Source of the DNA: Macrostomum lignano
Taxonomy: Eukaryota
NCBI GenBank assembly: GCA_002269645.1
Contig: NIVC01001726.1
Location: forward strand, 1 to 64,000
Direction: 5' to 3'
DNA: 64,000 nt
Each line of letters begins with the position of its first letter. Position 1 is the stretch's first letter. The notes under the pieces were generated by a model. That model did no database searches and was not told where the DNA came from. It was given only the letters and a program-made list of their open reading frames with translations. Both the position numbers and the translations under genes were made by a program. Below, in pieces: positions 8,026 to 40,396 of this stretch.

Positions 8026-8759
8026 TTCGAAAATGATTCATGTACTGTAAGGTATTCTCTAGGAAGCTGGCGAGCCTGGGCCAATCCATAAATCATATCT
8101 GATTTCTGATAAACACGCAACCAACCTTACAACCAACCACCCGGCATTTAGACTGGCAATAAAAACTGTCACGCCACCCCTTGAACAGGTGATCATAATC
8201 CACATGTACAGCAATAATCAGCGAACTCGATCAGCCTACACCTGTATCCATGCCTAAACTACCATAGCCGCTATACTTCCGTTGGACATCTGTGATTTTA
8301 TTTTCAAGTTTCGATGATGGAGGCGTCTGAAAATGTTTTTTTGGCACCCCACTTGGCTCAAATATCGTGCTCACAATCTAGCAGTGCTGTGTAACATTGA
8401 CTTGACAAGTACATGTATGTTTTTGTTGTTTGACTGCGAATATGGCTAAGATGGAAAATAGTGATTCTTGCGATCCGTTGCTTATCCTCTCGTCACTCTA
8501 TACAAACTCTAACTCTACATGCAGTTAGTGTACTGCACTATTTAATTAAAAATACTAAATATACGCTCGTACTATTAACTCCAAACAATGCACATTTTTT
8601 CAATGCACCTACGTTTCTGCAACTTTGGCGTTACGAGCTAAAGCAATATGATTGCCAATGCGCGTTTGATATTTGATTTATTGATTTGCCATGCGAGCAT
8701 GTAGTAGGGTTAGCGCTGCTACACCAGCCTCATCTTTGACGTATCCTCAAACTCGGCCT

Positions 8760-10545: not shown

Positions 10546-13500
10546 CTAGCACGGTCGGCCCATGCCGCGGCCCGGCTTCACCGGCTTGTTCTCATTGGGC
10601 AGGGTGCTGGAGCTGGCCGGATTCTTCACAGTCTCGTCAACGCTGAGCATGCTGCAGGCGGCCTCGGAGGCGGCCACAATGGCATTGGCCTTCACCAGGG
10701 CCGGCTCCCACACGCAGGCGGTGAAATTGTCGGCAACGTCCTCGCGCTGGATGTCGACGCCGGCCCACAGGTCGCCGTTGGCGTGCCGGTTGCGCAGCTT
10801 GTTGAGCACGAAGGTGGCGTCGAAGCCGGCGTTGTCGCACAGCTGGCGGGGAATGAGCTCGAATGCCTTGGCCATGGCGCCAATCAGCAGCTGCTGCTTG
10901 CTGGTGACATTGCGCGAGTGCTGGCGCAGGTGGTAGCTCAGCTCCATGTCGATGGCGCCGCCGCCGGCCACCACCGAGTCGTTTTTCCTGGCCCGGCGCA
11001 CAATCATGATGGCGTCGTGCAGGGATCGCTCGGTCTCCTCCATGAACTGTTCGGCACCGCCGCGGAGCACAATAGTGCAGGTTCGAGCTCGGGGACACCC
11101 GGTGAACAGGTTGTACCTGTCGGCACCGATCTGCACCTCTTCGAATAGTTCGCAGGTGCCCAGCGTGGCGTCGGTCAGGCCAACAACGGTGGTGTGGATG
11201 CGGCCACCGCAGGCCTTCTGAGTCCGGCGGAGGTCCTCCTCGGGCACGCGGCCGGCGCAGAACATGTCGCGGTCGGCGCACCACTGGGTGGCCACGTCGC
11301 CAATGGGCAGCTTGGATAGCACAATTTTCACTCCGGCTTTGTGCAGCGTGACCAGCTTGTCGTATAGTATGTTCCACTCGGTGTCCACCACCTGCGAGAG
11401 TATTTATAAAGTGTCTTTTCTAAACATATCGGTATAGGGACTAGTTTTAATAAATTAGATAGATATGGCACTCCTCTTCACGTCATTTATTGAGAAATTA
11501 TAAACCAATTCACCTGGCCACTTTATTCTTTATCATTGTATCTGTGGTCCCCGCTTTGTCGGTTTTTAGTTCTTTTTGACACATATCGGTAATCAACCCA
11601 GTATATAGAAAATGCTCCATTCAGAGATCTCCACAATAAGAATACTTCCTCGTATCAGTTAACTAAACTACTATGTAGAACATAGAAAGTTAGTTATATA
11701 AAAAATTAAATTTGGTCACATTGAGAATCGAACCCAGGACCTTAGAAACAGATAAAAGTACATGCGAGTGAAGCAAACTCACCTTCTGGTACTCTTCGAC
11801 GCTCTTAACTCGAACTTCGGCATTTTCGCGCTCGGCTCGCAGCTCGAGTTCAATGTTGAGCAGGGCAATCTTCGGGTTGGCATATTTCTTTGGCTGCATC
11901 TCGAAGCCGGCGTAGCTGAACGTCTTCTTGAAGGCGACGCCCGACACCAGTCGGGTGTCCTCCAGGGCACCGCCGGCAACCTTCTTGATGCCGATCATGT
12001 CAAGTGGCAGCAGCTCGTCAAGCAGCATCACAGCGTCTACCACCAGCTTGCTGAAGAACTCCTTCTGGTGGGCCACCAGCTTGGAGTTCAGGGCAGTGGT
12101 CGCGCACTTCTCCAGCAGGCTGCGGACCTGGCTGTAGTGGGATTTGGAATTCTAAGTTATGGGATTAGGATTCTGAGTTGTGGGATTGGGATTTTTAGTT
12201 GTGGGATTGGGATTCTTACTTGTGGGATCGGAATTTTTAGTTGTGAGATTGGAATTCTCAGTTGTGGGATTGGGATTCTCAGTTCTGGGATTGGAATTCT
12301 CAGTTGTGGGATTGGAATTCTCAGTTGTGGGATTGGAATTCTCAGTTGTGAGATTGGAATTCTCAGTTGTGGGATTGGGATTCTCAGTTCTGGATTGGGA
12401 TTCTCAGTTGTGAGATTGGAATTCTCAGTTGTGGGATTGGGATTCTCAGTTCTGGGATTGGAATTCTCAGTTGTGGGATTGGGATTCTCAGTTGTGGGAT
12501 TGGGATTCTCAGTTGTGGGATTGGGATTCTCAGTTGTGGGATTGGAATTCTCAGTTGTGGGATTGGAATTCTCAGTTGTGGGATTGGAATTCTCAGTTGT
12601 GGGATTGGGATTCTCAGTTGTGGGATTGGGATTCTCAGTTGTGGGATTGGAATTCTCAGTTGTGGGATTGGGATTCTCAGTTGTGGGATTGGGATTCTCA
12701 GTTGTGGGATTGGGATTCTCAGTTGTGGGATTGGAATTCTCAGTTGTGGGATTGGGACTCTCAGTTGTGGGATTGGGATTCTCAGTTGTGGGATTAGAAT
12801 TTTTAGTTGTGGGATTGGGACTCTCAGTTGTGGGATTGGGATTCTCAGTTGTGGGATTAGAATTTTTAGTTGTGGGATTGGGATTCTCAGTTGTGGGATT
12901 GGAATTTTCAGTTGTGGGATTGGGACTCTCAGTTGTGGGATTGGAATTTTCAGTTGTGGGATTGGGATTCTCAGTTGTGGGATTGGAATTTTTAGTTGTG
13001 GGATTGGGATTCTCAGTTGTGGGATTGGGATTCTCAGTTGTGGGATTGGGACTCTCAGTTGTGGGATTGGAATTTTCAGTTGTGGGATTGGGATTCTCAG
13101 TTGTGGGATTGGAATTTTTATTTGTGGGATTGGGATTCTCAGTTGTGGGATTGGGATTCTCAGTTGTGGGATTGGAATTCTCAGTTGTGGGATTGGGATT
13201 CTCAGTTGTGGGATTGGGATTCTCACTTGTGGGTTCGTGATTTTTAGTAGTGGGAGTTCAGACTCACGCAGGATCGTCCTTAGCGATCTTAACGGCGATC
13301 TCATCCAGCCGGTCCAGAGCCAGCTGGGTGCCCCTGCGCAGGGCGTGGATCACCACCCTGGGGTGGACGCCCTCCTCTAGGAACGGCTTCATCTGACGAA
13401 GGAACTCGCAGGCCAGAATCACTACGCTGGTTGTACCGTCGCCAACTTGAGCATCCTGCGATTTGGCGATGTCAACCAGGATTCTAGCGGCCGGGTGTAC

Positions 13501-13721
13501 AACGTTGAGCAGCTTCAAAATGGTGGCGCCATCGTTGGAGATGGTGGCCTTCTTGCGGTCGTCGATGATCAGTTTGTCCATGCCGCGGGCCCCAGGGTGG
13601 TGCGCACGGCCTCGGCTATGGCCTGGCAGGCGTTGATGTTGGAGATGATCTGCGGCAGGCCCTGCGAGGAGTCGGTGCCCTCCTTCAGCAGGATGATTCT
13701 GGGCTGGATTTGCTGAGTCAT
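10546..13721 (-). CDS. CCT7: T-complex protein 1 subunit eta (chaperonin CCT7); exons 13721-13268, 12131-11783, 11391-10546
   Basis: [72 protein letters not shown] and [13 protein letters not shown] match CCT7. GT-AG junctions are in phase. There is one 1-nt deletion at ~13588 (TTLGP/RGMDKL). Confidence 0.97.
12136..13232. repeat. 21-bp minisatellite (CTCAGTTGTGGGATTGGGATT) filling CCT7 intron 1
   Basis: 7-aa periodicity in several ORF frames; runs up to the acceptor. Confidence 0.97.
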
Positions 13722-13959
13722 GATGATGATAATAAGCTGTTAACTATTGAGTTCCGGTTTTGCAGTTGAAATTTACTTGCTTGCTTTTGCATGCAGTAAG
13801 AAAATAGAGCAGAGATGGAGTTACTATGGTGCTTAATAAATACGAACTGCCGTTTCGTCTATGGCACTAACTGAAAATCGACTCTGAACTCGAAATGCAG
13901 GCATCAGCGACACTCGTCCATATGCTGCTCAAATTCTCACCTGCAGACTGATCGAGATC

Positions 13960-15660
13960 TCACCTACTGATCAAAATCTCACCTATAGACTGATCAAAAT
14001 CTCACCTACAGACTGATCAAAATCTCACCTACAGACTGATCAAGATCTCACTTACAGACTGATCAAAATCTCACCTACAGACTGATCAAGATCTCACCTA
14101 CAGACTGATCAAGATCTCATCTACAGACTGATCAAAATCTCACCTACAGACTGATCATAAATCTTCACCTACAAACTGATCATAAATCTCACCTACAGAC
14201 TGATCAAAATCTCACCTACAGACTGATCAAAATCTCACCTACAGACTGATCAAAATCTCACCTACAGACTGATCAAAATCTCACCTACAGACTGATCAAA
14301 ATCTCACCTACAGACTGATCAAGATCTCACTTACAGACTGATCAAAATCTCACCTACAGACTGATCAAGATCTCACCTACAGACTGATCAAGATCTCATC
14401 TACAGACTGATCAAAATCTCACCTACAGACTGATCGAAATCTCACCTACAGACTGATCAAAATCTCACCTACAGACTGATCGAAATCTCACCTACAGACT
14501 GATCAAAATCTCACCTACAGACTGATCGAAATCTCACCTACAGACTGATCAAAATCTCACCTACAGATTGATCAAAATCTCACTTGCAGACTGATCAAAA
14601 TCTCACCTACAGACTGATCAAAATCTCACCTACAGACTGATCAAAATCTCACCTAAAGACTGATCAAAAAATCTCACCTACAGACTGATCATAAATCTCA
14701 CCTACAGACTGATCAAGATCTCACCTACAGACTGATCAAAATCTCACCTACAGACTGATCAAAACCTCACCTACAGACTGATCAAAATCTCACCTACAGA
14801 CTGATCAAAACCTCACCTACAGACTAATTAAAATCTCACCTACAGACTGATCAAAATCTCACCTACACCTACAGACTGATCAAAACCCCACCTACAGCTA
14901 CAGACTGATCAAAACCTCACCTACAGACTAATTAAAATCTCACCTACAGACTGATCAAAATCTCACCTGCAGACTGATCAAGATCTCACTTACTGATTAA
15001 AATCTCATCTACTGATTAAAATCTCACCTACAGATTGATCAAAACCCCACCTACAGCTACAGACTGATCAAAACCTCACCTACAGACTAATTAAAATCTC
15101 ACCTACAGACTGATCAAAATCTCACCTACACCTACAGACTGATCAAAACCCCACCTACAGCTACAGACTGATCAAAACCTCACCTACAGACTAATTAAAA
15201 TCTCACCTACAGACTGATCAAAATCTCACCTGCAGACTGATCAAGATCTCACTTACTGATTAAAATCTCATCTACTGATTAAAATCTCACCTACAGACTG
15301 ATCAAAATCTCACCTACAGACTGATCAAAATCTCACCTACAGATTGATCAAAATCTCACTTGCAGACTGATCAAAATCTCACCTACAGACTGATCAAAAT
15401 CTCACCTACAGACTGATCATAAATCTCACCTACAGACTGATCATAAATCTCACCTACAGACTGATCAAGATCTCACCTACAGACTGATCATAAATCTCAC
15501 CTACAGACTGATCATAAATCTCACCTACAGACTGATCATAAATCTCACCTACAGACTGATCAAGATCTCACCTACAGACTGATCATAGATCTCACCTACA
15601 GACTGATCAAGATCTCACCTACAGACTGATCATAAATCTCACCTACAGACTGATCAAGAT
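13960..15660. repeat. 23-bp minisatellite (ATCTCACCTACAGACTGATCAAA), between SPAG1 and CCT7
   Basis: Directly visible, ~1.7 kb. Confidence 0.97.
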
Positions 15661-16047
15661 CGTAACTATACGAGCGCGGACTTATCTCTACTAAAAACTA
15701 TTAAACTTCTAACTAAAACTATTTAAAAAATAAACGAAAAATCAGAATACCAACAATTGCATTGTATCAAAAAACGTAGCACAGCGTTACACATATCCAG
15801 TAAACTTGTATTCAGGAATTAGTGAGGCATTATAAAACCGCTATTTTTCACCACCATAACCTTGTGGACGGAAAAGAATATAAGAAAGTCACAAATTTAA
15901 GAAGCAAGAAACGCGTCTACACTACTCAAAGTAGCTTGAAGGGAAATTATTATTAAATGATGAGACACAAAACCAGCAGAAAAAGTTCAGTGCAACATCG
16001 TGTAGAAAAAAGGGAAAAATTGAGCTCCAAACAGCATCCGAGCTGCA

Positions 16048-19000
16048 TCACAGTTTGTAGGCCGTTTTCAACGCGCGCATCTCGTCTGGGCTGAGGGCGC
16101 CCAGCGACTCCAGCTTAGCGGCTGTGGCCGACAAATCTGAAAATACATTGGATTAATAAAGATTATCAAGCTGATCAACAGACACAATCAAGCTGAACAA
16201 CAGACACAATCAAGCTGAACAACAGACACAATCAAGCTGAACAACAGACACAATCAAGCTGAACAACAGACACAATCAAGCTGAACAACAGACACAATCA
16301 AGCTGAACAACAGACACAATCAAGCTGAACAACAGACACAATCAAGCTGAACAACAGACACAATCAAGCTGAACAACAGACACAATCAAGCTGAACAACA
16401 GACACAATCAAGCTGAACAACAGACACAATCAAGCTGAACAACAGACACAATCAAGCTGAACAACAGACACAATCAAGCTGAACAACAGACACAATCAAG
16501 CTGAACAACAGACACAATCAAGCTGAACAACAGACACAATCAAGCTGAACAACAGACACAATCAAGCTGATCAACAGGACACAATCAAGCTGATCAACAA
16601 CAGACACAATCAAGCTGAACAACAGACACAATCAAGCTGAACAACAGACACAATCAAGCTGAACAACAGACACAATCAAGCTGAACAACAGACACAATCA
16701 AGCTGAACAACAGACACAATCAAGCTGATCAACAGGACACAATCAAGCTGATCAACAACAGACACAATCAAGCTGAACAACAGACACAATCAAGCTGAAC
16801 AACAGACACAATCAAGCTGATCAACAGACACAATCAAGCTGATCAACAGACACAATCAAGCTGATCAACAGACACAATCAAGCTGATCAACAGGACACAA
16901 TCAAGCTGATCAACAGACACAATCAAGCTGATCAGAGACAAACCAGAAGCGCAGACAATCAGCACAAAGCCCAAGCCACTGACCGGCCTTCTCCTTGGCA
17001 TCCAGGAACATGACGACAAAGTCGAATCGTTCAGCGCCGGGCAGGCTGAGCAGCACGTTGGCGCCGGCGCGAGCGTCTCGCTCGGCCAGGCGGTCCCTGA
17101 CGGCGGCCACAATCTGCGCCAGCATGAGGCCGTCCAGCTTATTGGACAGCAGACGCGGCAGGCGGCTGCACTCGATGGCGGTCAGCATGTCGGCGTGAAC
17201 TGCCGAGGCCGGCTGGCTAGGAGAAGAAGACCGAGCTGCGGACAGCCAGGCCTGAGTAAACTCGAACGGGCTGCAGTCTGGGCGAACACAGGCCGAAGGC
17301 TTGTCGCCGACTGGCTCCGGAAATTGCAAACGCGGTGACGCGACGGTCGTTTTGTCGGTGGACGATACGCTTGTCTTAGTAGCCAATGTACTTTTTACAG
17401 GCTCGATAGTACTTTTGTCGGCAACTGGTGCACTTTTATTCGACTCTGCTGTACTTTTGATAGCAGCCGATGTTGTAGTAGTTTCGTTTGTACTTTTAGC
17501 AAGTACAGCTGCACTATTATCAGCAGCCGGTGTAATTTCATTCGACTCGGGTGTACTTTTCTCAGCAGCAGATACATCGGCAACAAGAGTACTATTATTG
17601 GAGTCTACTGTACTTTTATCGGTAGCTGTTGTACTTATTTCGGGTGTCGCCCCCCGCGCACCAGCGGCAGTCAGCCTCGACTCGGTCACAACTCCATCAA
17701 CCTCGCGAACAACGGCCACATCCGCAGCGTCTTGTCCAGCTTCTTCTTCATCGTCATCTTCGTCTTCAACTTCTTCAACAAGAACTCGCCTGCCCGCGGA
17801 TTTCCGCATAGCCGATTCAACCTCGGCAATCTCCTTAGCAATCTGCTTATTGAGCGGATCGAACGATTTGGCCAGATTGAAATCCAGCAGGCTCTCCCGA
17901 TAGAAGCCGAGCATTTTGCGGGCAACGCCGCGCCTGAAAATTGCTTTCATATTGTTGGGCTCGAGTTCCAACGCCATGTTGCACTCGTACACGGCGTCGT
18001 TAGGCTGGTCGAGTTTGATGTAACAGACGGCTCTGTTGGTGTAGGACACCGGGTCATTGGGCCGCAGCTCGCTGCATTTGTCGTAAAGCTTCACGGCACG
18101 GGCATAGTTGCCCGCTTTGAATAGCTGGTTGCCGGCCTCTTTAGCCGCGTCAAATTCGTCTGCCGGAGGCTGGGCCGGCGCCGCTTCATCCTGGGCAGCT
18201 GCCGCTTTCTTGTTGCTGGATTTTTTACCGGACTTCTTCTTGGATTTTTCTTTATTAGTCGAGTTGGCTGCTTCTGCGGCTTTCTCTTGCTGCTGAGGTT
18301 GCTCAACAGTGCTACTGTTGCTGGGGGAATACAGGTGGACAATGGATCCTTCATCACTGGCGGGCTGGCTTGCTCAGTCTCAACTTGACTATTCGAAGAC
18401 TGCACAGTCGAGCAGCTCCCGCCAGCAGCAGCTTGATGGCGCCCGTTCAGAGCGTTGCTGACTGGACCATTAGCTTCTAATCCAGCATTATTGTCGTCTT
18501 CATCATCCTCTTCCGAGCTGCCAACCTCTTCGATAACCATTCGCTTGGCCGAGGCGGAGGTCTTGCCCCGCTTAGCCAGTTCAGCATCCAGTTCGGACAG
18601 CAGAGCGGAGCCGGCCGCACTGCCGGGGTCCAGGCGTAGCAGGCGCTCCAAGTCTGCGCGGGCGTCAACAATTCGATGAATTTTTTGATAGGCGGTGGCC
18701 CGGCGCAGCAGCGCTTTAACGTTGTCTGGCTCGGCTTTGAGCACGCGGCCGCAGTCTTTTACGCAGGCGGTGTACTTTTGCAGTTTTAGATCTGTAATAA
18801 TGATAGTAATGCATCGGTAAACCATTGACATCTCAGCATTTTCCAAATGCCAGCTCGGAAACTTTCCGCAAACTCAAATCAGACTACTGATAGTAGAAAT
18901 ATGCAAAAATTATGACAAAAAACAAACGCAAATTCACAACAAACGAAAGCTTAATTTTTTTAAATCAGACTACTGACAGTAGAAATATGCAAAAATTATG

Positions 19001-21042
19001 ACAAAAAAATATAAAAAACATCGAAAAACTCACAAGCGAAAGCTCTATTATTGTAGGCAGCCGGCAGTGGGCTGGCAGACACGCTCCGGCTATAGTACAG
19101 GGCCGCCTCTTCGTAATCGCCCGATCGGAACGCTTCGTTGCCCTTTGCTTTCTCCTGTTCGGCTAAACGAGCTCGCTCTTCACTAGATAGACCGTCAACA
19201 CGCAGCCGGTTGGGCAGATTGGGCATCTTTCGACTAGCCGGAGAAGCTGTTGCAGCTGGCGAAGTTTTGCTAGCGTTGGCCTGAGGGGTTTTGTTTTGCT
19301 ATCAGTTATTTCTCCTCTAACCATGCACTTGTAGTCCCAAAGTATAAAAGGATTGAAAGCCCTTATGGAGATCTGAAGCTTCGAGCTTGTGAAAGGAATT
19401 GAAGGCCCTTATGGGGATCTGAAGCTTCGAGCTTGTGAAAGGGATTGGAGGCCCTTATGGGGATCTGAAGCTTCGAGCTTGTGAAAGGGATTGGAGGCCC
19501 TTATGGGGATCTGAAGCTTCGAGCTTGTGAAAGGGATTGGAGGCCCTTATGGGGATCTGAAGCTTCGAGCTTGTGAAAGGAATTGAAGGCCCTTATGGGG
19601 ATCTGAAGCTTCGAGCTTGTGAAAGGGATTGAAGGCCCTTATGGGGATCTGAAGCTTCGAGCTTGTGAAAGGGTTCTATAGATTCTATATAAAGAATTCT
19701 ATAGGGCAACACCTGTTTGATGGAGGCTTCATCAGCGGAAATAGCGGCGTCCCGCTCCTCCTGCGCCTCCAATTGCTTCTCCAATTTTGACCATTCGTCA
19801 TAGCTACGCGGCATCGGCCGTTTTGCCGAGCTGGCTGATACGCTAGAACCGGAAGTTCGACCGGATGTAGTCGTTGTTGAAGAAGCCATCTGCTGCTGCT
19901 GCTGAGACGGACTCAAGTTAATAGTGGCATTAGCCGCTCGAACTGGCGGCAAGAGATCGTCCGCATCGGTTTTGGATTTCTCCTGGCCGGCATCGGCACT
20001 GCCAGTATTAGTATTCACTGCGGCAGTCCAAGCATTCAAATCCGCCGCTATGCTGGCCCACTCGGCCTGATCGAGGCCGGCCGCACTAAGCGGCGGCTGC
20101 TCCTTGCGTAGCACTCGGCTGAGGGCGGAATTCGGGAATTCAAATTGATAAAAAATAGAAAAATGAAACCATTGGACTTGTACTGGCTCTTTTTTGCCTC
20201 AAGATGAGATATGCGTGTAAACTACTTTCAGTTCAGTAGTAAATTAAACAGAAGCATTTTAATGTATTTTTAAAGCCAAGGCTCATTTATTGGCTCTTAC
20301 CCCCCCCCAACCGCTTTCCACACTACCCGCCCCGCCCCTGCAATTTTATTGCCTTTCTCTCGGAATTCCAGCCTAAAGCTGCCATGTACATTTCAGTGGA
20401 CTGGCTAATGTACATTATGACTGAACCAATTAGCAAGCTGTTTACGCCTGCAAGCTTGGGCTTCTAAACTTATCAAAGTCATTTCAGCTCTGCCATTAGT
20501 TTTATAAAATAGCTTATGTATTCTTATTTGCTACTGAACTGAAAGTAGAAAGCTGTTTACTAAGTATATATGCCCGAGTGGCTCATCCAGTTATTCTAGT
20601 ATCTGTGGTGTAGCCTATTTTTGAACTCCAATTGCACTCTAACTAGCCTACTGTGTTAGTGGAAAGATAAGCGCCAACACAACGATTCTTGGACGGCTCT
20701 TTCGGTATCATTTACAATGGGCTTATCCCCCGTAACGGGAGCATGTCTATTGCTGGTCTTTTCTTAAAAACCGCTTTTGCGATACGCTGAGAAGCAGCAC
20801 GGTTTTAAACAAACACTGAATCCAAAACTACTCAAACAACTGTACCTGTTTGGAGCCAACAATCTGAGCCTCTCCTCGCAATGGGTCTCCAACTCCGGAT
20901 AGCGGCCCTCCTCGCCAGATAGCAACACTTTGTAGATGTTTTCTAATTCTTTAACGTCCGAGCAGCCCGATATGTATCGAAAATCTAAATGATCCAGAGG
21001 TATATTGTACCTCCTGGTGAACTGGGCAGTCATCGGGTCCAT
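16048..21042 (-). CDS. SPAG1: Sperm-associated antigen 1-like TPR co-chaperone with RPAP3-type C-terminal domain; exons 21042-20846, 20118-19713, 19280-19034, 18791-16984, 16136-16048
   Basis: The N-terminus IPLDHLDFRYISGCSDVKELE..L.SGEEG.YPEL..HCE matches the SPAG1-specific N-terminus. Two TPR clusters (EKAKGNEAFRSGDYEEA; KEAGNQLFKAGNY). The C-terminal SPFEFTQAW...LSNKLDG...RFDFVVMFL is the RPAP3_C domain. All junctions are GT-AG and in phase; one 1-nt indel near 18370. Confidence 0.92.
16170..16935. repeat. 22-bp minisatellite (AATCAAGCTGAACAACAGACAC) in the last SPAG1 intron
   Basis: Directly visible, highly homogeneous. Confidence 0.97.
19358..19673. repeat. 46-bp tandem repeat x~7 in a SPAG1 intron
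   Basis: TCGAGCTTGT recurs at 46-nt spacing (19381, 19427, ...). Confidence 0.95.
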
Positions 21043-22057: not shown

Positions 22058-25000
22058 TCATCCGTGACCCTGGGGCGGCTGCCGACTATTGGGCTGCGAC
22101 AAGCGCACCTGACGCAATGAGCTATTCAACACATTGACAAGGCCGCCGGAGCCTGCCGAGGCAACGCTGGAGTCGGAGGCCGCGGATAACGACGATGTCG
22201 GCGATGATGAAGGAGTGGATGCTGCATAGGCGTCGCTGCTGTCGCCGCTGCCGTCATCGTCGACGGCGCCAGCCGGCTTCGCGACGCCAGCGGACGCCAC
22301 CGCTGTGGCTGTTAACGACGGGACCGTTGCCGCCGACGCAGCGGCCCCAGTCGGCGACGGCATTGCCAGGCCGGCGACGCCCTTAAGCCGATCGGTCGGG
22401 CCGAAGCCGCGCTTCACTCGGCGCACCTTGGAGGCGTCGTCTTGGCGCTGCTGCACCATCAGAGCGAAGTCGACAACGTAGGCATAGCCGAATATCACCA
22501 GGGAGCAACACGGCTCCGACCTTGACGTGGGGAGGTGAGCGGACAGGGTGAGACTGCGATTTGAGTTGTGAGCTTAGTCTGGAGATATAAGAGGGGGCGG
22601 TGGCCTAGCAACTGAGGATCTGGGAGGCCGGCAGTGGCCCAGCAACTGAGGATCTGGGACTGGCCCAGCAACTGAGGATCTGGGACTGGCCCAGCAACTG
22701 AGGATCTGGGAGGCTGGCCCAGCAACTGGGGATCTGGGAGACTGGCCCAGCAACTGAGGATCTGGGAGGCTGGCCCAGCAACTGGGGATCTGGGAGGCTG
22801 GCCTAGCAGCTGGGGATCTCTGAGGCTGGCTGCTCAGCAACTGGGGATCTGGGAGGCTGGCCTAGCAACTGGGGATCTGGGAGGCTGGCCCAGCAACTGG
22901 GGATCTGGGAGGCTAGCCTAGCAGCTGGGGATCTCTAAGTCTGGCTGCTCAGCAACTGGGGATCTGGGAGGCTGGCCTAGCAACTGGGGATCTGGGAGGC
23001 TGGCCCAGCAACTGGGGATCTGGGAGACTGGCTCAGCATCTGAGGATCTGGGAGACTGGCTCAGCAACTGAGGATCTGGGAGACTGGCTCAGCAACTGAG
23101 GATCTGGGAGACTGGCACAGTAACTGACGATCTGGGAGACTAGCTCAGCAACTGAGGATCTGGGAGGCTGGCAGTTTAGCCAACAGATCCCGTGTGGCCA
23201 TCTGATCAGGTTTTTCGCCCGGTTTTGCTCTGGCTTGCTATGTTTTTTGCCCCATTTCCAGGCGAAGAACATAAACCAGGCGAATTTATCCGGTTTTTCT
23301 CTGCCTTTCTAAACCAGGCGAAATTCCGGAGGAAAAACCGTACGAGTGCTCTGGTTTTTTACCCGGTCCTTCGCCAGGTTTGGAACCAGTTTAGTAACGC
23401 AGGGAAATCCGGAGTAAAAGCGGATGAAATAACATTTCCGGCTGGAATTTTGCCCGGTTCTTTCTCTGGTTCTTCGACCGGACAAGAGCCGGATAAAAGA
23501 GCTGATGAAAGCCTTTAATTCAGGATTGGGTTGAAAATGGTATGGGAGACACAGTGTATAATTGACAATTGACATGAAGATTTTCTTGTAATTACATGTC
23601 CTGTAATGTGCTCCTGTTTTGTTCTCTTGCAGTATTTTTTCCGCTCATCTTTATACATATCATATGAGCGTCTTTGTATGTCACATTACGAGCGTAGTTC
23701 ACGTAAACTGAGAATAAAAATATATTGTCATTTTAATGCTGTCATCGCACACATTTCTGAAGGCTGCATGCTACTGTGGGATTCCAACGTTGATTTCCTC
23801 TTTTACAAAAATGTATAAGCAAAGTCCCATCCCCGAATTGGCCCGCTAGGCGTAGCGTACGTAGCAGCCTTTGTTAATAAAGTTTCATGAATTTCCAGTG
23901 CTGGTAATTAAGAAACCTGAAATAATCAGCGGGCGCGACGACTGCAACAAAATATTGACGCGGCCTGCGCTGAGTTGACTGACCGACCGCGTTCCCCGGT
24001 TAGTCGCGCTGTACCTAGTACTTCGCGCAGCAGTAGCACTGTCGTCGCAGCATCGTCGCAGCTTCTCAGAGGTGCCGAGTCCGTAGACACCGGTGACAGT
24101 GAGCCCTCCGAGCATGGTGAGTAGCATCGAGGATCTGCAAAAAGCGGCCCCGATATCCGTTGATACAGAAAAACTATCGCGCGTTTCCCACAGACTCCAG
24201 TGACGGCAGCAGTGGAGGCGACCAAAGCCGCAGTGACGCTGAGTCCGTAAACAGCGCTGGCCGCAATGGCAGCGACGGTACAGAGACACCCGACTCTTAG
24301 CCCTCTGAGCATGGTGAGTAGCATCGAGGATCTGCAAAAAGCGGCCCCGATATCCGTTGATACAGAAAAACTATCGCGCGTTTCCCACAGACTCCAGTGA
24401 CGGACGTGACGCTGAGTCACTTGACTCCAGCGACAGCGATGGCCAGGAACAGCCAGTTCTTGATCCCTGGCTACAGCTACCGTGGCACAACGGCGAACCC
24501 ATCACGGGCACCATTGGTGAAGCTGTGTGTCATATCAACGACTGCGCCATTGATCTTGGAATCCCAAGTAAAAAATTAACCAGACTTCTACGTCTTGTGC
24601 ATTGTCTGGTTCCGGGAAGTCGAATTCCGCGCACTGCAAGAACTATGTGGCGGACGCTAAAGTCCGCCCAGAGTTACATCGGCTCCGCAAAATGCGTCAC
24701 TGTGTGCAACGAGTGCTACGTAAACTACCGAGGAGACTGCAGTCAAAACGGTGGACATTGCAGTGACTGCGGATCAATGAGAGTCGCAAACTTCTGGGTT
24801 TTCAACATTAGAAAGCAGATCCGAACTCACATAGAGTCATGTGGACTGCTGCATAATTTGACTTTTCCTTCCGACTTCAATCCGCACGAAGACACCATCC
24901 ATTTCTACAACAGTCACCTGTACAGACAGTTTCGGGAGTCGATAAACCTAGTTGCTAAGAGCGACCTCTCGTATACTCTGAGCTCTGATGGGTTTCCAGC

Positions 25001-28000
25001 ACGGTCAACCAGCAAGGTAGAGGTGTGTCCAGTCTACTTAAGCATCAACGAGGTTCACGATCATGTCAAGTTGCGCTATGACATAATCTATGGGCTCTGG
25101 GCTGCTAAGACCAAAGTGAGTTCAGCGGCTTTCCTTCCGGTGGTCGTCGACGCGCTGATTTCTTTACGCATCCGGGGCGTAACGTACACTGACGCTGATG
25201 GAGTTCAGCGTACGATACGCTTCCATCCGTTGCTAGCAATGTTCGACTCACCGGCTCGTGCAGATGCGCTCCGCATGCGACGATGCACGGCTATCTACGG
25301 CTGCGAGAAGTGCTACATTGCTACGCGTCTTCATCCTTCAGGCTCTGGGCGTGTCTTCGACGTCGGCTTAACGCCAGCAATGCAGAATGCTGCTCGACGC
25401 CTAGGTTGTCTGCAAACTGTCCTGCGGAGCATGGCAGATACGCGCAGATTAGCGGAGCAACACCTAGCAGGTGCTCGGCACCAGAACACAGACACATTGG
25501 GTGTCCGAGGCCACTCTCCGTTAGGACGCCTCCCGGGCTTTGACTTCATGCGCGGATGTCCGCCGTGTTATCTCCACCAGCTGCACCTAGGTCTGGTCCG
25601 GATGATAATGTACCAATTATTCCTGGTGCGGGCCGAGAAGCCGGACCGAGGAGAAACTAATTGTCCGGACCTGCACCGGCTTCAACATCAGATCGATGAG
25701 CCGCTGCTCCGCATCCGGCTGCCCATCAACGTCCAACGACATTAAGTGCGTCCACTAAGTGACCTCCGCAATTTCCGTGGGCACGAGTTTGAAATGTGGC
25801 TGATGGCTTACGGCCCCCTCGTTTTGAAAGCCGTCCTACCACCCGCCCACTACCAGCATCTGTTACTTCTTTCCGCTGCAGTGTTCTGGATGACTGCCGA
25901 TTATGCGCCTCTGTCTGAGTTGCGGCACGTAGAGATTGCATTGCGCCACTTCCACGACAAACTGTATAGGTTGTACTCCTTAAGAGCACTAACCTATAAT
26001 GCTCATCAGGTGTGCTGCCACATGCTGACATACGTCCATCTGGCCGGCTCTGCGCACCGCCTATCGGCTGGAATTTTCGAAAGCACGCACTTGCGCCTGC
26101 AAAAACGCCTGCATGGGACGCGGCGCATCGACGTCGAGCTGGTTGGCGCCGTGGAGCGCCACATCGGCACCATCCAAGCGCGAGCGCGACTGATCGGGCA
26201 CGGGGATCAGCAAGACGAAGAGGAATTATTCCGTCGAACAGAAGTACTCACCCTTCCAGATTTCGTGCTTCGTCGACCGAAGCGCTGGCAAGTCGGATGG
26301 CACAGTGACACTCTGAAATCCGGTTGGACAATACGAATTTTCACTCCCGGATGTCAGGATGCGGCAGGCTTCGTGGCCATCGAAGGTGACACTACGACGG
26401 ATTTCCGATTCTGCCGAGTGCAAACCATCGAATGTCAAGGTGAGCAGGTTAGGCTCGGACTGCTCGTACTGCCAGTTCTCGCGGCCGTCGACCCGCTGGA
26501 GGAACTAGCACAGGTTGCCACAACGTCACCTAATCGAGGCTGTCGACTCGCGCAGTTCCGAGTATTCGCATGCGATCCCTTCGGCGACTTGAGCTACCTC
26601 GGCGACCCGATTCATGTGGGGCTGCCACAGTTTCGTGGCGTCTGTGTCGTCACCGACACAAAAGTAGCTCTGCTGGCCCATCCGCAGTTGGGCTATTCGT
26701 AGAGTCTGCTGGCGTCCGTAGCAATGGGATAACTGATTGACAGGCTGGGATAACTGATTGACAGGCTAGGATAACTGATTGCCAGCATAAAACGTATTTT
26801 CCTTTCGTTTTTTCCTTACTTTACGATTGGCAAAAAAATAATCAAATTTCTATTATATTTTTTAACAAACTGTAGTAGTCGTTCTAATTGTTAGCGATTT
26901 TGTAAAAATGTATATATATGCACCTAATAGTAGATGCAATTAAACCAAAAAATTGAGTCCGGTTTCCAGAAGCATCTGGATGAGATGCTTTATGAGTCAT
27001 ATGTAGTGAAGTGATACATTTTGGCTCTAGAAAGTTCCCATCCAGATTGAATGTATTTTAACCAATGAATGCGCTCCAAATAGCAAAAGCTGAGGACACG
27101 ACCCCAACGTCAACCAATGAAAAGCAGTTATGTACGATCCAATGCGATTAAGACTGAAAAGTAGTATAAAAGCTCATGTTAACCAAGCAAGAAGCTCGCC
27201 TTTTCTCTCTTCCGCGCCTTTTCTCGCCCTCGCCTCTCTTTCGCCCTTCTCCTAGCCTACCTCTTTTGACTATTTTGATTGACACAGTTAGGGTGTCAAC
27301 CCAAACGCTAAAACTAATTAATTGACTCACTAAAGCTAAACCAACACCCAATTCACGTTCTACAATAGACTGAACCTTCGGTTTACCCGAACAATTAGAA
27401 ACCCTTTGTAACTTAAGCTGAACGAGCTTCTTATTTGGAATTCCATCTTAGACCTTATATTTTGTAAGATAACACCTCGAGATTGTGACCATCAAATACA
27501 ACGGTCTGTAAGTTAACACCAAGTGTTTTCATCATCAGGAAAAGTCAGTTGAATCCGCCGCCTCAGTTATTTGGCTCTCACATTGATATTTGAAGTAGAA
27601 CAAGAGCCATACTCGTAGAAGTGAGAGACCAGAACGATAACGATAACATACGTATATACGTATATAATTTTAAAATATTTCAGTAGCTTATTTACGTGTT
27701 ACTTCCGTATACTATATTCACTTCATTTTTTGTTGTGTTCATATGCATAAGAATAAGAATATTCTTATAGGTGGTCAAAACCCTTTTCAGACTGACCCCA
27801 TTGGATTTAAATCATGTCGGATCGCCCCATAATTGACTGGCCAAAACTTTTCGACCGAATGATCGCTGACGGGGATGCCCGTGCCAACGTCGACTCCGAT
27901 GACGGCAGCGACACCACAATCGGTGGTCACTCTCCCGGCCCGCCACCAACGTCGACCCGCGCGCGAGCCACTGCTGAGTCCAAGTATACGTGGGAGGACT

Positions 28001-31000
28001 ACAACCGGCTACCACCGGCTGCTCCACCGTCATTTGAGTCGAGGCGTTGGGACGAGCGACGCCTACTACCTGCGCAAACTTGCCCGGACTGCGCCTCATG
28101 GTAAGCGGAGCTGTCGCCGACTAGCCGAGCACGCCGCTTAGCGCTGCACGGCCGCCACCGACACAGGCGGATCGTGCAAGCGCCAAACTTCTTCGCGATT
28201 GAAATGCCGCCATCACCACCTCCCGTACCGTTGGATCAATTGAAAGTGAGGAAGCGGCGTCGAAGGCCGCTTCGGGGTCTGTCATAGAGACCCCGCACTG
28301 AATACGAGTGACTACTGCGATTGATGGACTGGAGACTGCCTCAATTGATGGATTGATGACATTGAGATGATGATGACATTGAGATGATGATGACATTGAG
28401 ATGATGATGACATTGAGATGATGGACGTTAGACATGCACGTTTGTATGTATACCAGCATATGCTGATAAATACACTAAGGCCTTGTTGCCGGCACAATTT
28501 GTACGGACTTTTTGATTGAGGAGGAAACCGACAGCCTTAATTGTTACTCTTGAGTCCAGGCCTAGTTAAAGTAACGTACGAGTACAATTACATTTCACCC
28601 ATGTGAACACAGAACACAGTATTGACACAAAAAACTCACCTTTTTCAGCTGCCCTAATCCTAATGGGCACAGGAAAGAAGACTACTGCCGTAGTCGGCAA
28701 GTCGAAATCAAATTCCACGTCCACTTCAAAGTCGAAGTCGAAGCCGACCTCCAAATCAGCTCCAACAAAGGCGCCGTCGAGTAAGTCCGGTGGAAAGAAG
28801 CGCAAAGCTGTGACTGATGACGATGAGTCATTGAGTCAATTTCTCGGTCGTACTGCCGAGAAATCACGTCGACTGCAGGATCCGCTATTGTCAGCCATCG
28901 AAGATACTGACACTATGTCTGCTGCACAGACTTCGGGCCCTTCTTCGTCTGCTGTCGCAGAGGGCACCCAACGGGATGACGTTTTCATACAGCATGACAT
29001 GGTGCCCTACGAACGTGAAGCGGTACCGCGATTCTTTATTTTTAAGTACTCCAACTATTTCGAAAAAAAACAGACGTTTTCAGCACGCGCGATGACATTG
29101 TTGGACGCAAACGCGAGTTCCCGAGTAACGTCGTCGATGTCGGCAGCGAAGTCTTAATTGTCGTCGCTAAGGCGAACAGGACGGCCGCGAAAAAATGGCT
29201 CGGGACACTAGTACGTGGGCCGTTCGCTTCCAGAAGCATCGCGACCGGCACAGCGGTCCTAGGAAACGTACACGCTCAGCCATCGGAACTTCCACGTGCC
29301 TGTGCATCCTGCCGGACGTTTGCTATAGAGAACGAGCGACAGTCGTCGCTTATAGACACCCTGCGTGAGTGCCATCAATTGTTGGTCGTTACTTGTGCAC
29401 TTTCAGGTCGGGTATAGTGCCTTTTTTGTTTGAACCACCGCATACTTTTCTAGGGAGCCAGTTACAGCACAGCACAGTTGAAGAAACGAATCAGCGAGAA
29501 AGCGTCCGACTATTAACGGAGCAGCTTCGTGTCGCGAATCGTATGGAGCGGACGCTTTTACGCCAACTGGAGGACGAGCAGCATCGTAACGTGCTGCTGG
29601 TCAGCAGCATGCAGCAGTGCAACTCGCTGCTTATTCAGGGGTCAGAGCTGCTTTCCCAGAATGCCCGCGAAGTCTCTCAGCCGGCCCGCTCGAGTACAAA
29701 AGCTGCATCTGACACCAATGACGCCGATGGCGGTGATGACGGCGACGCCAGCGATTCCAGGCAGGACGCCATGTCCTTCACTGTAACGCAGAGCTTGTCC
29801 GCAGCGCAGACGCGCGCTCTGAAAGATGCCTGCGACGCCGCCGCGCCGAACGTTGACCTAACAGCTGCTTATCTTGTGCCATTCTCTGAGCAGCAGGGCT
29901 TCGTTAAGGTAGCTTTGAATAAGCGGCACGATGCGGAAGATCGGCTAGAAGCCTACAAAAAAGTGCCAGCCAATCAGGATGGCGAGGACGCAAAACTTTC
30001 TGCACTCCGAAAGTCTGTGACGCTGGCAGTTCTCCGAGCTGCCCTGCGTGCCGTCTTCACGGACAGGGAGTTCGACTGCTGCACACTGTCCGGGCGCAAG
30101 GCGCCCGGTCAGACCACATCTTCACCCGCAAACCCGGGAAAATTGGCTGCAGTACGTGTGTGGCTCGCGAACGCCGGGGTGCAGTGCACTGCCGACAGTC
30201 TAAGTCAGGCGTTCACGCAATGCACTGCGACTGCGCGGCAGAGACTGGAACTCCCAACGCGCTCCGCCCCTCCCCCCCAGCGGAAGCAGCCGAAACCGCC
30301 AAAGCCGAAGGCCACAACAGTCGTCATTATAGACTCCGCTGACTCTGCTCAGAGCCGCGAAGTCTGTCAGCCAACCCTCTCGAATACAACAGCTGCATCT
30401 GACGCCAATGACGCCAATGACGCCGATGACGGCGATGACGCCAGAGATGCCAGAGAGGTCGAAATGCGGCATCTGGAGGGGGACGACGATCAGAGCGCCA
30501 TGGACGGCACAGTCAGCTGCGGCGACTTTCTGAACATACTTTTGGCCAGTCAGAAGTGATTTTAAATTCCCGCATTTATGCGCCTAGATGACTAGCGACT
30601 ATGCGTCTACTGACTGTATTCTACAACATCTTTGGAATAAAAAAAACAGAGGAGTATATTGATCTTGTAGGTGATTTGGAACAGTTTGATGAATTGCAAG
30701 ATGGAACGTTACATAGTTTGTATTAACACTAACTGACAATTGTCTTACTTCTTTAATCTTCACGGTCGGTATCCGTTGACAGAAGCGCACTGTAGATGTT
30801 TTACTAAGTCGGCACTACATATTTCCGAGATGAAGGGTTTTTCGTCCGGTTTGATCGTCGTGTCGCTTTCGTTAGGTTTTAGTCTGATTTTGCTCCGGAT
30901 ATTCGTCCGGTTGGGTCGTCGTGTCGCTTTCGTTAGGTTTTAGTCTGATTTTGCTCCGGATATTCGTCCGGTTGGGTCGTCGTGTCGCTTTCGTTAGGTT

Positions 31001-31997
31001 TTAGTCTGATTTTGCTCCGGATATTCGTCCGGTTGGGTCGTTGTGTCGCTTTCGTTAGGTTTTAGTCTGATTTTGCTCCGGATATTCGTCCGGTTGGGTC
31101 GTCGTGTCGCTTTCGTTAGGTTTTAGTCTGATTTTGCTCCGGATATTCGTCCGGTTGGGTCGTTGTGTCGCTTTCGTTAGGTTTTAGTCTGATTTTGCTC
31201 CGGATATTCGTCCGGTTGGGTCGTTGTGTCGCTTTCGTTAGGTTTTAGTCTGATTTTGCCTCGGTTATTTGCCGGGTTCTGCTATTGCACTTTCATCCGG
31301 TCATTTGTCGGGTTTTATTCAGGGTACTCATCATTTTGAGTAGCCGAAGAGAAACCCGAGAAAATACATGATGTCCTCTACGAAATTCCTGACGAACAAC
31401 CAGACGAAACTGCCGTCTTCGTCCGTTTTCGAGACCACTTTCCCGAGGATTTTCGGGTTTTTAGATAGGAAAAAATGTATTACAAACCGGGAAAAAATCC
31501 CGATCGCCTACCGGGCGAAAAACCTGATCAGATGGCCACACGGGGAATTTCAAAACTAAGCGGCTAGACCAAAGATTGTAAAACAGTGAAAAGTGCAGCC
31601 TCAATAAATAGACAATTCACCTATTATAAGCAGCCTCCAGCTCGGCGCAGTGCCTCTCCTCAAACTGCCACCAGCCGTTGCGACCTTCGTAGTACCAGCC
31701 GCGCTGTCTGCATGCCGGGTCAGACGCGCAATCGACAGAATCAGCGGCCGCCGCCTCGGCGTTACCACTGGCAACGAGGACGCCAACGCTAGACGCGGCG
31801 GCCGACTCCTGCGGCAGGCGGGGTCGGGCGAAAAAATCGGCGGGTATCCGCGACCGGCACAGGGGGCAGCGCATCGAACGGAGGGCGGCGCCTTTGATGC
31901 ACAGGAAGCAGAAGCGGTGGGGGCAGGCCGGCAGGGACACGGGGTGCACCATAGGGCTAAGACACACGGCGCATTCATCACATGATGCTGCAGCCAT
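22058..31997 (-). CDS. RNF146: E3 ubiquitin ligase RNF146/iduna (RING + WWE); coding exons 31997-31621 and 22553-22058 separated by a 9,067-bp intron
   Basis: Exon 1 has ECAVCLSPMVHPVSLPACPHRFCFLCIKG (RING) and WYYEGRNGWWQFEE (WWE). Exon 2 has LVIFGYAYVVDFALMVQQR...VRRVKR...KGVAGL, the rest of the WWE domain. The phase-2 donor at 31620 and the acceptor at 22554 join them in frame. Confidence 0.92.
22600..23170. repeat. 26-28-bp minisatellite (GGCTGGCCCAGCAACTGGGGATCTGGGA) in the RNF146 intron
   Basis: Directly visible; the same family occurs inverted at 56525-57030. Confidence 0.95.
23189..23223 (+). repeat. Left TIR (CCCGTGTGGCCATCTGATCAGGTTTTTCGCCCGGT)
   Basis: Exact reverse complement of 31510-31544. 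Confidence 0.97.
23930..26702 (+). pseudogene. EnSpm-type DDE transposase, interrupted (introns 24117-24193 and 24314-24390; in-frame stops at 24298-24300 and 25743-25745)
   Basis: Family motifs are visible: CxxC zinc-finger-like region, LSSDG(F)P..S..(V)CPVYL.INE (D1), MFDSPAR...YGCEKC (D2 + CxxC), GVRGHSPL..LPGFD...YLH.L.LG, R..R.L......E...WL, and IFES (E). The 5' start was not determined. Confidence 0.88.
27814..28104 (+). CDS. Short orphan ORF inside the transposon (96 aa, or first exon ending at the GTAAG donor at 28101)
   Basis: ATG 23 nt after a polypyrimidine-AG acceptor; GC-rich; no recognisable domain. Confidence 0.4.
   Translation: MSDRPIIDWPKLFDRMIADGDARANVDSDDGSDTTIGGHSPGPPPTSTRARATAESKYTWEDYNRLPPAAPPSFESRRWDERRLLPAQTCPDCASW
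28663..30559 (+). CDS. Transposon accessory protein (TnpA-like role): Lys/Ser-rich N-terminus, coiled coil, BEN-like domain; intron 29365-29453; 1-nt slip in the A8 run at 29063-29070
   Basis: A phase-1 GT-AG intron joins the frames. LRAALRAVFTDREFDCCTLSGRK...NPGKLAAVRVWL...LSQAFTQCTATARQRL fits the BEN domain pattern (l..lFt.eel...sl.G...LDp.kl.ai...kc...R) as recalled. Confidence 0.65.
30842..31260. repeat. 61-bp subterminal tandem repeat x~7 near the right end of the transposon
   Basis: ATTCGTCCGG recurs at 61-nt spacing (30901, 30962, ...). Confidence 0.95.
31510..31544 (-). repeat. Right TIR
   Basis: Exact reverse complement of 23189-23223. Confidence 0.97.
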
Positions 31998-32349
31998 GCC
32001 AGCAGCAGGTTTGTTACTATGCTCCTGAGTATGCATGCAGTAAAAAACATTTGTCTGATCTTATACTTTTATAAAATAAATTTTATATAAGCGATCTTGC
32101 ATGCACATTAGGGAGCCAACAATTTAAGTAAAGTATCTTTTTTTCTTTGAATTTTCTCGTTTTATGGCTACTGTGCGAAATTGCATTTACCATTCATTTT
32201 AATTAAACCAATCAATCATTTTAGAGGCTATATCCTATATACTATAGCTCAATATGAGTTAATACTAGCAATCCAGTCCATTTGGGGAGTGCAAAAATGA
32301 AAATGAAAATATGGCTGAAAATATTAAAGAATGGACCCATGCTTCCAGT

Positions 32350-39600: not shown

Positions 39601-39762
39601 TCTCTAGCTGGCCCTAATTGAGGCGGAGTTTGCCGACCCTGATAATACAAACTGAACTTTTTTCATATCTGATTGAAAGTCTCCTGTTAGTTTAAAATTA
39701 CTTCCAATTGATTAATCCGCAGAAATATGGAGAGAGAAAGAGAGAGAGATTCACTTCTTGTC

Positions 39763-40396
39763 TACGACCAGTTTTGCTAAGCTATCTCGTGTCTCTATGA
39801 TTCTAGCAGTCATACCGTTCTCACTACGACCAGTTTTGCTAAGCTATCTCGTGTCTCTATGATTCTAGCAGTCATACCGTTCTCACTACGACCAGTTTTG
39901 CTAAGCTATCTCGTGTCTCTATGATTCTAGCAGTCATACCGTTCTCACTACGACCAGTTTTGCTAAGCTATCTCGTGTCTCTATGATTCTAGCAGTCATA
40001 CCGTTCTCACTACGACCAGTTTTGCTAAGCTATCTCGTGTCTCTATGATTCTAGCAGTCATACCGTTCTCACTACGACCAGTTTTGCTAAGCTATCTCGT
40101 GTCTCTATGATTCTAGCAGTCATACCGTTCTCACTACGACCAGTTTTGCTAAGCTATCTCGTGTCTCTATGATTCTAGCAGTCATACCGTTCTCACTACG
40201 ACCAGTTTTGCTAAGCTATCTCGTGTCTCTATGATTCTAGCAGTCATACCGTTCTCACTACGACCAGTTTTGCTAAGCTATCTCGTGTCTCTATGATTCT
40301 AGCAGTCATACCGTTCTCACTACGACCAGTTTTGCTAAGCTATCTCGTGTCTCTATGATTCTAGCAGTCATACCGTTCTCACTACGACCAGTTTTG
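39763..40396. repeat. 62-bp tandem repeat x~10, essentially identical copies
   Basis: GCTATCTCGT recurs at 62-nt spacing (39781, 39843, ...). Confidence 0.97.

Follow-up and report, generated by a model that had tools for sequence, protein, structure and literature searches.

A structurally complete, coding-defective CMC transposon with a probable BEN-type accessory gene in the intron of an RNF146-like gene of Macrostomum lignano

The insertion in the RNF146-like gene

We analysed a stretch of 64,000 nucleotides from the genome of Macrostomum lignano (assembly GCA_002269645.1, contig NIVC01001726.1, positions 1 to 64,000; in the following, the window), in which a transposon of 8,356 bp (23189-31544) lies antisense to its host and inside the sole intron of an RNF146-like gene. 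The host gene is encoded on the minus strand by two exons. Exon 1 (31621-32036) codes for a RING finger and the first part of a WWE domain (Pfam zf-RING_2, zf-C3HC4 and WWE), and exon 2 (22058-22520) codes for the remaining WWE domain and a Ser/Ala-rich tail. The spliced protein was 98-100% identical to M. lignano BOX15_Mlig011180 (98% to BOX15_Mlig011180g1), and its best named matches were RNF146 proteins of insects, molluscs and vertebrates (E = 1e-47 to 1e-31). It thus has the N-terminal RING followed by WWE that marks RNF146, and RNF146 proteins are its closest named relatives outside Macrostomum.

The host intron (22521-31620, minus strand) measures 9,100 nt and holds the element together with a 28-bp minisatellite (22601-23172). 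This minisatellite abuts the element, occupies most of the original intron and recurs in inverted orientation at 56535-57041, 33 kb away. The donor GT of exon 1 is located at 31620-31619, and the junction ...AAYNR|SEPCC... of the protein annotated from a filled copy (P0285) places the acceptor at 22521. An earlier reading of the window from its letters (hereafter the sequence-only reading) had rightly described a WWE coding sequence split by the intron and a distance of 76 nt between the exon 1 donor and the element. Its figures for the expansion of the intron, from ~711 bp to 9,067 bp, need correction: the filled intron is 33 nt longer, and ~741 nt remain in the window when the element is removed.

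Both ends of the element are sharply defined by terminal inverted repeats (TIRs). The left arm (23189-23223, plus strand, 5'-CCCGTGTGGCCATCTGATCAGGTTTTTCGCCCGGT) pairs as an inverted repeat with the right arm (31510-31544, minus strand), the two being complementary at 35/35 nt (100%) and starting with 5'-CCCGTGTGGCC. The perfect 35-bp, CCC-terminated TIRs of the sequence-only reading were therefore recovered in full. Allowing <=3 mismatches, the first 22 nt of the TIR occurred at 2 sites in the window, both of them element ends, with 0 sites expected by chance. The termini read 5'-CCC...GGG-3', not the 5'-CA...TG-3' that is given for the CACTA/EnSpm-Mirage-Chapaev (CMC) superfamily "in most cases", and the terminal pentanucleotide is CCCGT, not the CACTA of strict plant EnSpm/CACTA elements.

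A direct view of the insertion was provided by the host protein cluster, which has 3 members on 3 contigs of the same assembly. One is the window's own filled copy (L004, NIVC01001726.1), which agrees with the window at 13,001 of 13,001 bases (100%). Another (L005, NIVC01002249.1) carries the same element at the same site and in the same flanks, its copy being 8,187 bp long and differing from that of the window by 41 substitutions and 13 indels. In the third (L003, NIVC01000017.1) the gene is just 1.9 kb long and free of the element. The intron of this empty copy, an empty site of the kind that the sequence-only reading had proposed to look for, consists of both window flanks joined without the element (...GGCAGTTTAGCCAACAGAATTTCAAAACTAAGCGG...; also CAGAATTTC and CCAACAGAATTTCAAAA), and the filled window sequence reads ...CCAACAGAT[CCCGTG...CACGGG]GAATTTC.... 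Because the same assembly holds a second filled and one empty copy of the locus, the insertion is a real one, made by transposition and accompanied by a target-site duplication (TSD) of just 2-3 bp. The left copy of the target site is GAT (23186-23188), the right copy is GAA (31545-31547) and the empty site is GAA, so that either a 3-bp duplication of GAA with one later change or a 2-bp duplication of GA with an extra T can account for the flanks. Perfect 35-nt TIRs and a TSD of 2 or 3 bp are in line with CMC elements, which have TIRs and a short (2-5 bp) TSD.

TSDs of related elements were also inspected. Two independent insertions of a related M. lignano family are flanked by AGT/AGT (L001) and GA/GA (L006), and a comparison of the flanks of a metagenomic copy (L002) gave no TSD match. 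The search in more lineages found nothing in L008 and an unreliable candidate in L009, and the right end of L007 lies beyond the fetched locus. A 2-bp TSD fits the window (GA with an extra T), L001 (AG with an extra T) and L006 (GA), and 3 bp is equally parsimonious. A T directly precedes CCC at 4 of 5 left ends.

The locus copies also bear on the age of the insertion. By substitutions, the window had diverged from L005 by 0.5% within the element and by 0.6-1.0% across the flanks, and from the empty copy by 1.0-2.5%. As the two filled copies share the insertion and have diverged to this degree, the insertion is older than their split, and since both carry the same in-frame stop codon (see below) it is not very recent, contrary to what the sequence-only reading had concluded from the identical TIRs. 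Its suggestion of a possible polymorphism agrees with the empty and filled versions in one assembly, which may be alleles or paralogues. Next to the RNF146-like gene, on the minus strand from 13000-20100 onwards, come a tetratricopeptide repeat (TPR) gene (RPAP3_C match in the L005 copy) and then a Cpn60/TCP1 chaperonin gene. This order is kept in all 3 locus copies, so the 3 contigs represent a single larger segment, present as haplotypes or as duplicates from a genome duplication. The minisatellite varies in length among the 3 locus copies, hence the intron of ~1.04 kb in the empty one. Through the insertion, an intron of about 0.7-1.0 kb has grown to 9.1 kb. The earlier proposal that splicing of RNF146 may be affected found no support in the annotation, which gives the filled copy a normal junction, though it cannot separate the near-identical locus copies.

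The transposase gene and its relatives

The plus strand of the element contains a transposase reading frame (24357-26702; 781 codons including one stop), which is made up of two open reading frames (ORFs; 24357-25745 and 25746-26702) in one frame. In an alignment of 56 sequences, near-invariant acidic columns point to the catalytic residues D211 (24987-24989), D297 (25245-25247) and E575 (26079-26081), and C316-x2-C319 and H550-x4-H555 likewise fall in conserved columns. D297, both of these motifs and E575 were each conserved in 96-100% of the aligned sequences. This pattern of D, CxxC, Hx4H and E has been described as characteristic of EnSpm, Mirage, Chapaev and Transib (PMC12730594).

A Pfam scan of all ORFs of the element gave nothing significant, and the transposase profile had no match among PDB sequences. 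A word-indexed search returned one transposase homologue, M. lignano P0001 (35% identity, 96% coverage), and an exhaustive profile search returned 7,619 relatives, 460 of them below 1e-30. The nearest relative of the window transposase was P0003 from a Tara Oceans marine metagenome (44% identical), followed by M. lignano P0001/P0002, P0004, P0005, P0006, P0008 and P0009 with 33-38% identity. Beyond this small near clade there was a big score gap and then a large family from many animals. Among the next-nearest relatives sampled, 50 of 60 matched Pfam Transposase_21 (PF02992; tnp2, En/Spm transposase), and some also matched DUF4218 or Plavaka. Comparison of the window clade with these Transposase_21-bearing relatives by hhalign gave a probability of 100% and E = 1e-73 over 550 columns, and by this profile-profile comparison the DDE transposase is homologous to the tnp2/Transposase_21 core, as is characteristic of CMC elements. 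A motif that is widespread as PDYMH reads PPCYLH in the Macrostomum clade; we take it to be the C/D-x2-H motif described for these superfamilies. The CCC ends alone could also have suggested piggyBac or Transib. Both were excluded by the transposase homology and by the lack of a TTAA or 5-bp TSD.

Two lesions are evident in the gene. An in-frame TAA (25743-25745), which is also present in L005, lies upstream of the codon for E575. Where it stands, the intact homologues P0001 and P0003 have sense codons (VQRH*VRPLSD in the window vs VQRRGARPLKD in P0003), and the L005 transposase contains this TAA plus an additional stop. The 5' end of the gene further carries a tandem duplication with a 197-bp period (24095-24403, plus strand), consisting of two 112-nt copies of 96% identity that are 197 nt apart. 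Each copy includes an intron-like segment (GTGAGT...CCCACAG), and the duplicated exon-like piece has a TAG; the frame would be restored by a splice from the exon that precedes the first GTGAGT to the second acceptor. Judged by its sequence, the window copy cannot make an active transposase and is not autonomous, because the TAA precedes E575 and because the duplication disrupts the frame at the 5' end. An assembly error is an unlikely origin of the TAA since two contigs share it. We also considered that the TAA might be part of an intron and rejected this, as the sole GT...AG pair around it spans 14 nt and the codon aligns within conserved sequence.

The accessory gene and the subterminal repeats

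Downstream of the transposase lies an accessory gene (28663-30559, plus strand), for which we modelled exons at 28663-29014, 29047-29364 and 29454-30559 and a product of 591 aa. Two plus-strand ORFs in this region, 28603-29157 (184 aa) and 29369-30559 (396 aa), had been counted as two further ORFs of a multi-gene payload by the sequence-only reading. They are pieces of one gene, because the tblastn alignment with the homologue from L002 crosses from the first ORF into the third frame (29055-29393, E = 8e-11) and continues at 29765-30250 (E = 2e-11). Continuation of the small domain ending in GPF in frame 1 (...FEKKQTFSARAM...) was dropped on the same evidence, the third frame being the homologous one (...LVRGPFASRS...). 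In addition, the 396-aa ORF has a homologue in the P0001 element (L001), namely the ORF that follows the transposase there (pairwise E = 8e-5). The Arg codon next to ...DTL is split by an intron at 29365-29453 (C|GTGAGT ... TTTTCTAG|GG), and L002 has a GTAAGT donor at the identical position and phase. Removal of a 32-nt GT...AG segment (29015-29046) joins the first two frames, and the spacing then equals that of L002; this segment may be a very small intron or a frame-breaking insertion. If spliced, it would be unusually small for an intron. At 29065-29072 there is a run of eight A in the window and of seven in L005, a length-polymorphic homopolymer inside the gene.

The spliced 591-aa model has no interruption, and its parts are collinear with those of the L002 and L001 proteins. 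From the N-terminus it comprises a basic region with KKRK, the small conserved domain ending in ...GPF, a CxxC and coiled coil, a C-terminal domain of ~130 aa and an acidic tail. A hidden Markov model (HMM) of the C-terminal domain found a same-strand ORF downstream of the transposase in 5 of 5 lineages (window, L001/L006, L007/L008, L002 and L009), including two outside the HMM training set (L002, 8e-14; L009, 8e-8). In several M. lignano UniRef models (P0005 and cluster members) the domain is fused to the transposase. A word-indexed search of 5.8 billion proteins with the accessory-domain alignment returned no homologue, an exact-sequence look-up of the 396-aa ORF had nothing on record, and in the Pfam scan no downstream ORF matched TnpA or Transposase_24. 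In L005 a 690-bp in-frame deletion (window 29677-30366) between 81-nt direct repeats (window 29665-29745 and 30355-30435) has removed the whole BEN-like domain described next.

For this C-terminal domain (29852-30247, plus strand), which spans about residues 162-293 of the 396-aa ORF, resemblance to BEN domains emerged from a profile of PDB sequences, from Pfam on a relative and from Foldseek on an AlphaFold2 (AF2) model. The top 3 profile matches among PDB sequences were all BEN domains (Bsg25A 4x0g, E = 0.09; NAC1 8yzs and 7bv9). Pfam BEN (PF10523) matched one family member at E = 0.0033, which is below threshold, and had no match in the window's own sequence. With the AF2 model (pLDDT 68, pTM 0.61), the top 3 Foldseek matches were BEN-DNA complexes (4ix7 and 4x0g; probability 0.97-0.98, E = 0.2-0.3, TM 0.40-0.48), followed by the BEN domains of BEND6, BANP and NACC1. 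A conserved ...LLRxLFTxEE...SG... motif aligns with BEN structures. Taken from sequence profiles and a predicted fold, the domain is probably a BEN domain. BEN is established as a sequence-specific DNA-binding domain (PMC11601247).

Both subterminal regions of the element are rich in short motifs of the TCCGG/CCGGA type. The left region extends over 23224-23530 and the right one over 30780-31509 (both given for the plus strand), the latter including a tandem array of 61 bp x 6.9 (30841-31259) with TCCGG motifs in each unit; the array is 5 units longer in L005. In the window element we counted 7 motifs within the first 500 bp and 20 within the last kb; in L002 the counts were 40 and 23 for the two ends and ~7 for the interior. 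In L001 the subterminal motif is a different one, GGTAAC, so that the clusters at both ends vary by lineage. Short repeats clustered at both ends are as expected of EnSpm/CACTA elements, and the TCCGG motifs are likely candidate targets of the accessory protein. Such lineage-variable clusters are the pattern expected for binding sites of a sequence-specific protein encoded by the element, and as BEN domains bind DNA, a TnpA-like role of the accessory protein would be the most economical model.

In the spacer between transposase and accessory gene there is one more ORF, initiated by ATG and encoding 96 aa (27814-28104, plus strand), for which no homologue was found in the related elements. It ends at a good GTAAG donor, and in L005 a 288-bp in-frame insertion keeps it open (193 aa). 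The multi-gene payload of the sequence-only reading is thus reduced to one conserved accessory gene and this unexplained ORF. Its placement of transposase and further ORFs antisense to the host was borne out, the ORFs lying on the plus strand and the host gene on the minus strand, and so was the presence of subterminal repeats.

Interpretation and related systems

We consider it highly probable that the element is a structurally complete, coding-defective copy of a two-gene CMC transposon of the animal "CCC-terminus" type, inserted antisense by cut-and-paste into the intron of the RNF146-like gene. Its accessory protein is probably BEN-like and may have a TnpA-like role. The sequence-only reading of a CMC (EnSpm/CACTA-like) transposon with CCC termini and short TSD agrees with the transposase profile match and the empty site. 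Its term full-length applies to the structure of the element and not to its coding capacity, as no active transposase is encoded. A second, probably DNA-binding protein, which it had mentioned for plants, is indeed present as a gene; this is no TnpA homologue, however, and is BEN-like instead. In intact members, the DDE transposase with its C(2)C and H(4)H motifs would cut at the CCCG termini and integrate with a 2-3-bp stagger. By analogy with TnpA of maize En/Spm, the coiled-coil and BEN-like protein may bind lineage-specific short motifs in both subterminal regions (TCCGG here) and, once bound, may help to assemble or regulate the transposition complex. The window copy would be mobile only if an intact relative recognizing the same ends supplied transposase in trans, and would otherwise persist as an intronic passenger.

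Several points weigh against this interpretation. The superfamily assignment is transitive, with the window's own proteins below every Pfam threshold, and the TSDs given above disagree across copies (GAT/GAA, AGT/AGT, GA/GA and the missing match in L002). Modelling of the 5' exons found no in-frame ATG for the transposase, whose start codon and 5' structure are left out of the model, and the accessory gene is intact only with the 32-nt segment spliced out. One alternative concerns the accessory protein. Its C-terminal domain could be another small helical DNA-binding domain, for example a helix-turn-helix (HTH), or not bind DNA at all, in which case the N-terminal or zinc-finger region of the transposase might bind the subterminal motifs. 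All BEN scores are marginal and sub-threshold (HMM E = 0.09-0.6; Pfam E = 0.0033 in the relative only; Foldseek E ~0.2), and in Pfam the window's own sequence comes closest to HTH_64 (E = 0.0003-0.001, also below threshold). A second AF2 model (P0005 as target, pLDDT 55) had no BEN match and gave meaningless fold matches, and the transposase has a conserved CxxxC...CxxC module. Its N-terminus could recognize the putative TCCGG targets. Against this, BEN was ranked first by three methods (PDB sequence profile, Pfam on the relative, and Foldseek on the better model), and the LLRxLFTxEE...SG motif aligns with BEN structures. We therefore regard a domain other than BEN as possible, although less likely.

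The remaining alternatives fare worse. Were the downstream ORFs captured fragments of host genes or chance ORFs (a Pack-type payload) and no functional accessory gene, then the failure to reach any Pfam threshold, the empty result among 5.8 billion proteins, the compositional bias (Ser/Lys-rich, with acidic stretches) and the loss of the domain from L005 by deletion would all be readily understood. Five lineages with transposases just 33-44% identical to that of the window nevertheless carry a homologous ORF that is placed and oriented alike, the intron is conserved in position and phase, the order of domains is collinear across three lineages, and several M. lignano gene models (P0005 and cluster members) fuse the accessory domain to the transposase, which makes such a payload improbable. 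It might also be that the window copy inserted recently, is autonomous and may even be active today, given its identical TIRs (35/35), its full set of predicted catalytic residues, an accessory gene modelled as an uninterrupted 591-aa ORF and the empty site in the same assembly. This is largely refuted, and we consider it very improbable: the in-frame TAA lies upstream of E575, the 197-bp duplication with its TAG disrupts the 5' region, and L005 has the insertion, the TAA and the TSD mismatch in common with the window despite 41 substitutions, 13 indels and flanks that are 0.6-1.0% apart. Moreover, the annotation lists no gene inside the window copy but both genes in the Mlig026393 family.

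The known element nearest to that of the window is L002, a complete 9.9-kb element at 97-10043 of Tara Oceans contig ERZ976238 k127_1411745, with TIRs matching at 29/30 positions, an intact 863-aa transposase and a spliced accessory gene. Its source is presumably an unsampled marine flatworm-like animal in the plankton metagenome. This element (P0003, L002) belongs to the same clade as the window element, as do M. lignano Mlig026393 (P0001), Mlig001703 (P0005) and Mlig033474 (P0006). These relatives share the CCCG termini (CCCGTTG, CCCGCGGG, CCCGCTG), the order of transposase and accessory gene, the C-x2-H variant of the D-x2-H motif and the subterminal clusters. They differ from the window element in transposase sequence (33-44% identity), in their TIR sequences and, for L001, in the subterminal motif, and their transposase ORFs (946 and 863 aa) are intact, in contrast to that of the window copy with its nonsense codon. 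CCC tips were found in 5 of 5 lineages examined, with element starts of CCCGTGTGG in the window, CCCGTTGAAAA in L001/L006, CCCGCTGAAAA in L002 and CCCGCGGGAAA in L007, all of them beginning with CCCG. On the L007 contig (NIVC01000822.1), the right end of one Mlig001703-family element (2268-2306) and the left end of the next (7316-7354) are 5 kb apart; the right end of the second is >16 kb away, which suggests nested insertions.

At superfamily level the element is of a known kind, CMC, and resembles the animal TRC type with a conserved BEN-like second gene added. SmTRC1 of Schistosoma mansoni and its relatives in Tribolium and Aedes are animal "TRC" elements of the CACTA superfamily (DeMarco et al. 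2006, PMC1636069), for which a CCC core at the TIR tips and a 2-bp TSD were reported (PMC1636069). Shared with the window element are a platyhelminth host (SmTRC1), TIRs starting with CCC, a very short TSD and Transposase_21 homology (PMC1636069). Going by its description, SmTRC1 is set apart by its size of ~4.7 kb, 54-bp TIRs and a single ORF with alternative splicing, compared with 8.4 kb, 35-bp TIRs and a separate accessory gene here; the window transposase is also too divergent for a direct Pfam match.

Further parallels and differences exist with plant CACTA elements and with cellular BEN proteins. Maize En/Spm encodes the TnpD transposase and the DNA-binding protein TnpA. It shares with the window element, as do plant CACTA elements in general, the superfamily, two proteins (DDE transposase and putative binder), subterminal repeats at both ends and a short TSD, and the fused M. 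lignano gene models hint at a shared transcription unit as in Spm. The termini of the window element are CCCGT and not CACTA, its BEN-like accessory protein is unrelated to TnpA, and its two genes are apparently arranged in tandem, whereas those of En/Spm are alternatively spliced products of one exon set. BEN proteins, such as Drosophila Insensitive and Elba/Bsg25A or human NACC1, BANP and BEND6, gave the best profile and fold matches of the accessory C-terminal domain, and the arrangement of a coiled coil ahead of a BEN domain is common. These known BEN proteins are cellular chromatin or transcription factors; the BEN-like protein described here would be encoded by a transposon, and its similarity is below every curated threshold. 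A literature search of incomplete coverage found no CMC element described for Macrostomum and no BEN-type gene in a DNA transposon. It is conceivable, although we consider it unlikely, that the window element and its relatives represent an undescribed flatworm clade of CMC elements with CCCG termini, the C-x2-H variant and two genes, in which a coiled-coil/BEN protein takes the TnpA role and binds co-evolving subterminal motifs.

Outside the element, the window is rich in minisatellites, with >20 arrays of 17-88-bp period and up to 74 copies (for example at 2562-3964, 12137-13255, 13925-15661, 16165-16931, 57881-58526 and 60047-61031). Most long ORFs outside the element fall within such arrays and are probably repeat artefacts. 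A 62-bp x 10.2 tandem array at 39762-40396, whose copies match at 100%, suggests a very recent expansion or an assembly collapse.

As an insertion the element is ordinary, a decayed DNA transposon in an intron of a repeat-rich genome, and what is modestly new is its accessory module, together with the clean set of empty and filled loci. One assembly with both versions fixes the exact ends of the element, narrows its target duplication to 2-3 bp, and documents an antisense intronic insertion that leaves an intron of 9.1 kb and is tolerated in an RNF146-like gene. A probable BEN-type gene beside the transposase in five lineages, together with lineage-variable motifs, offers a testable animal parallel to TnpA/TnpD of En/Spm and may connect BEN-domain proteins with mobile DNA. 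If a BEN protein does act in the TnpA role, it would provide the first example of a BEN-domain protein with a demonstrated function in a transposon, and a descent of some animal chromatin factors with BEN domains from transposon genes would become conceivable. M. lignano is a transgenic model, so that an intact member of the clade, for example of the Mlig026393 family, could be tested there as an endogenous transposition system.

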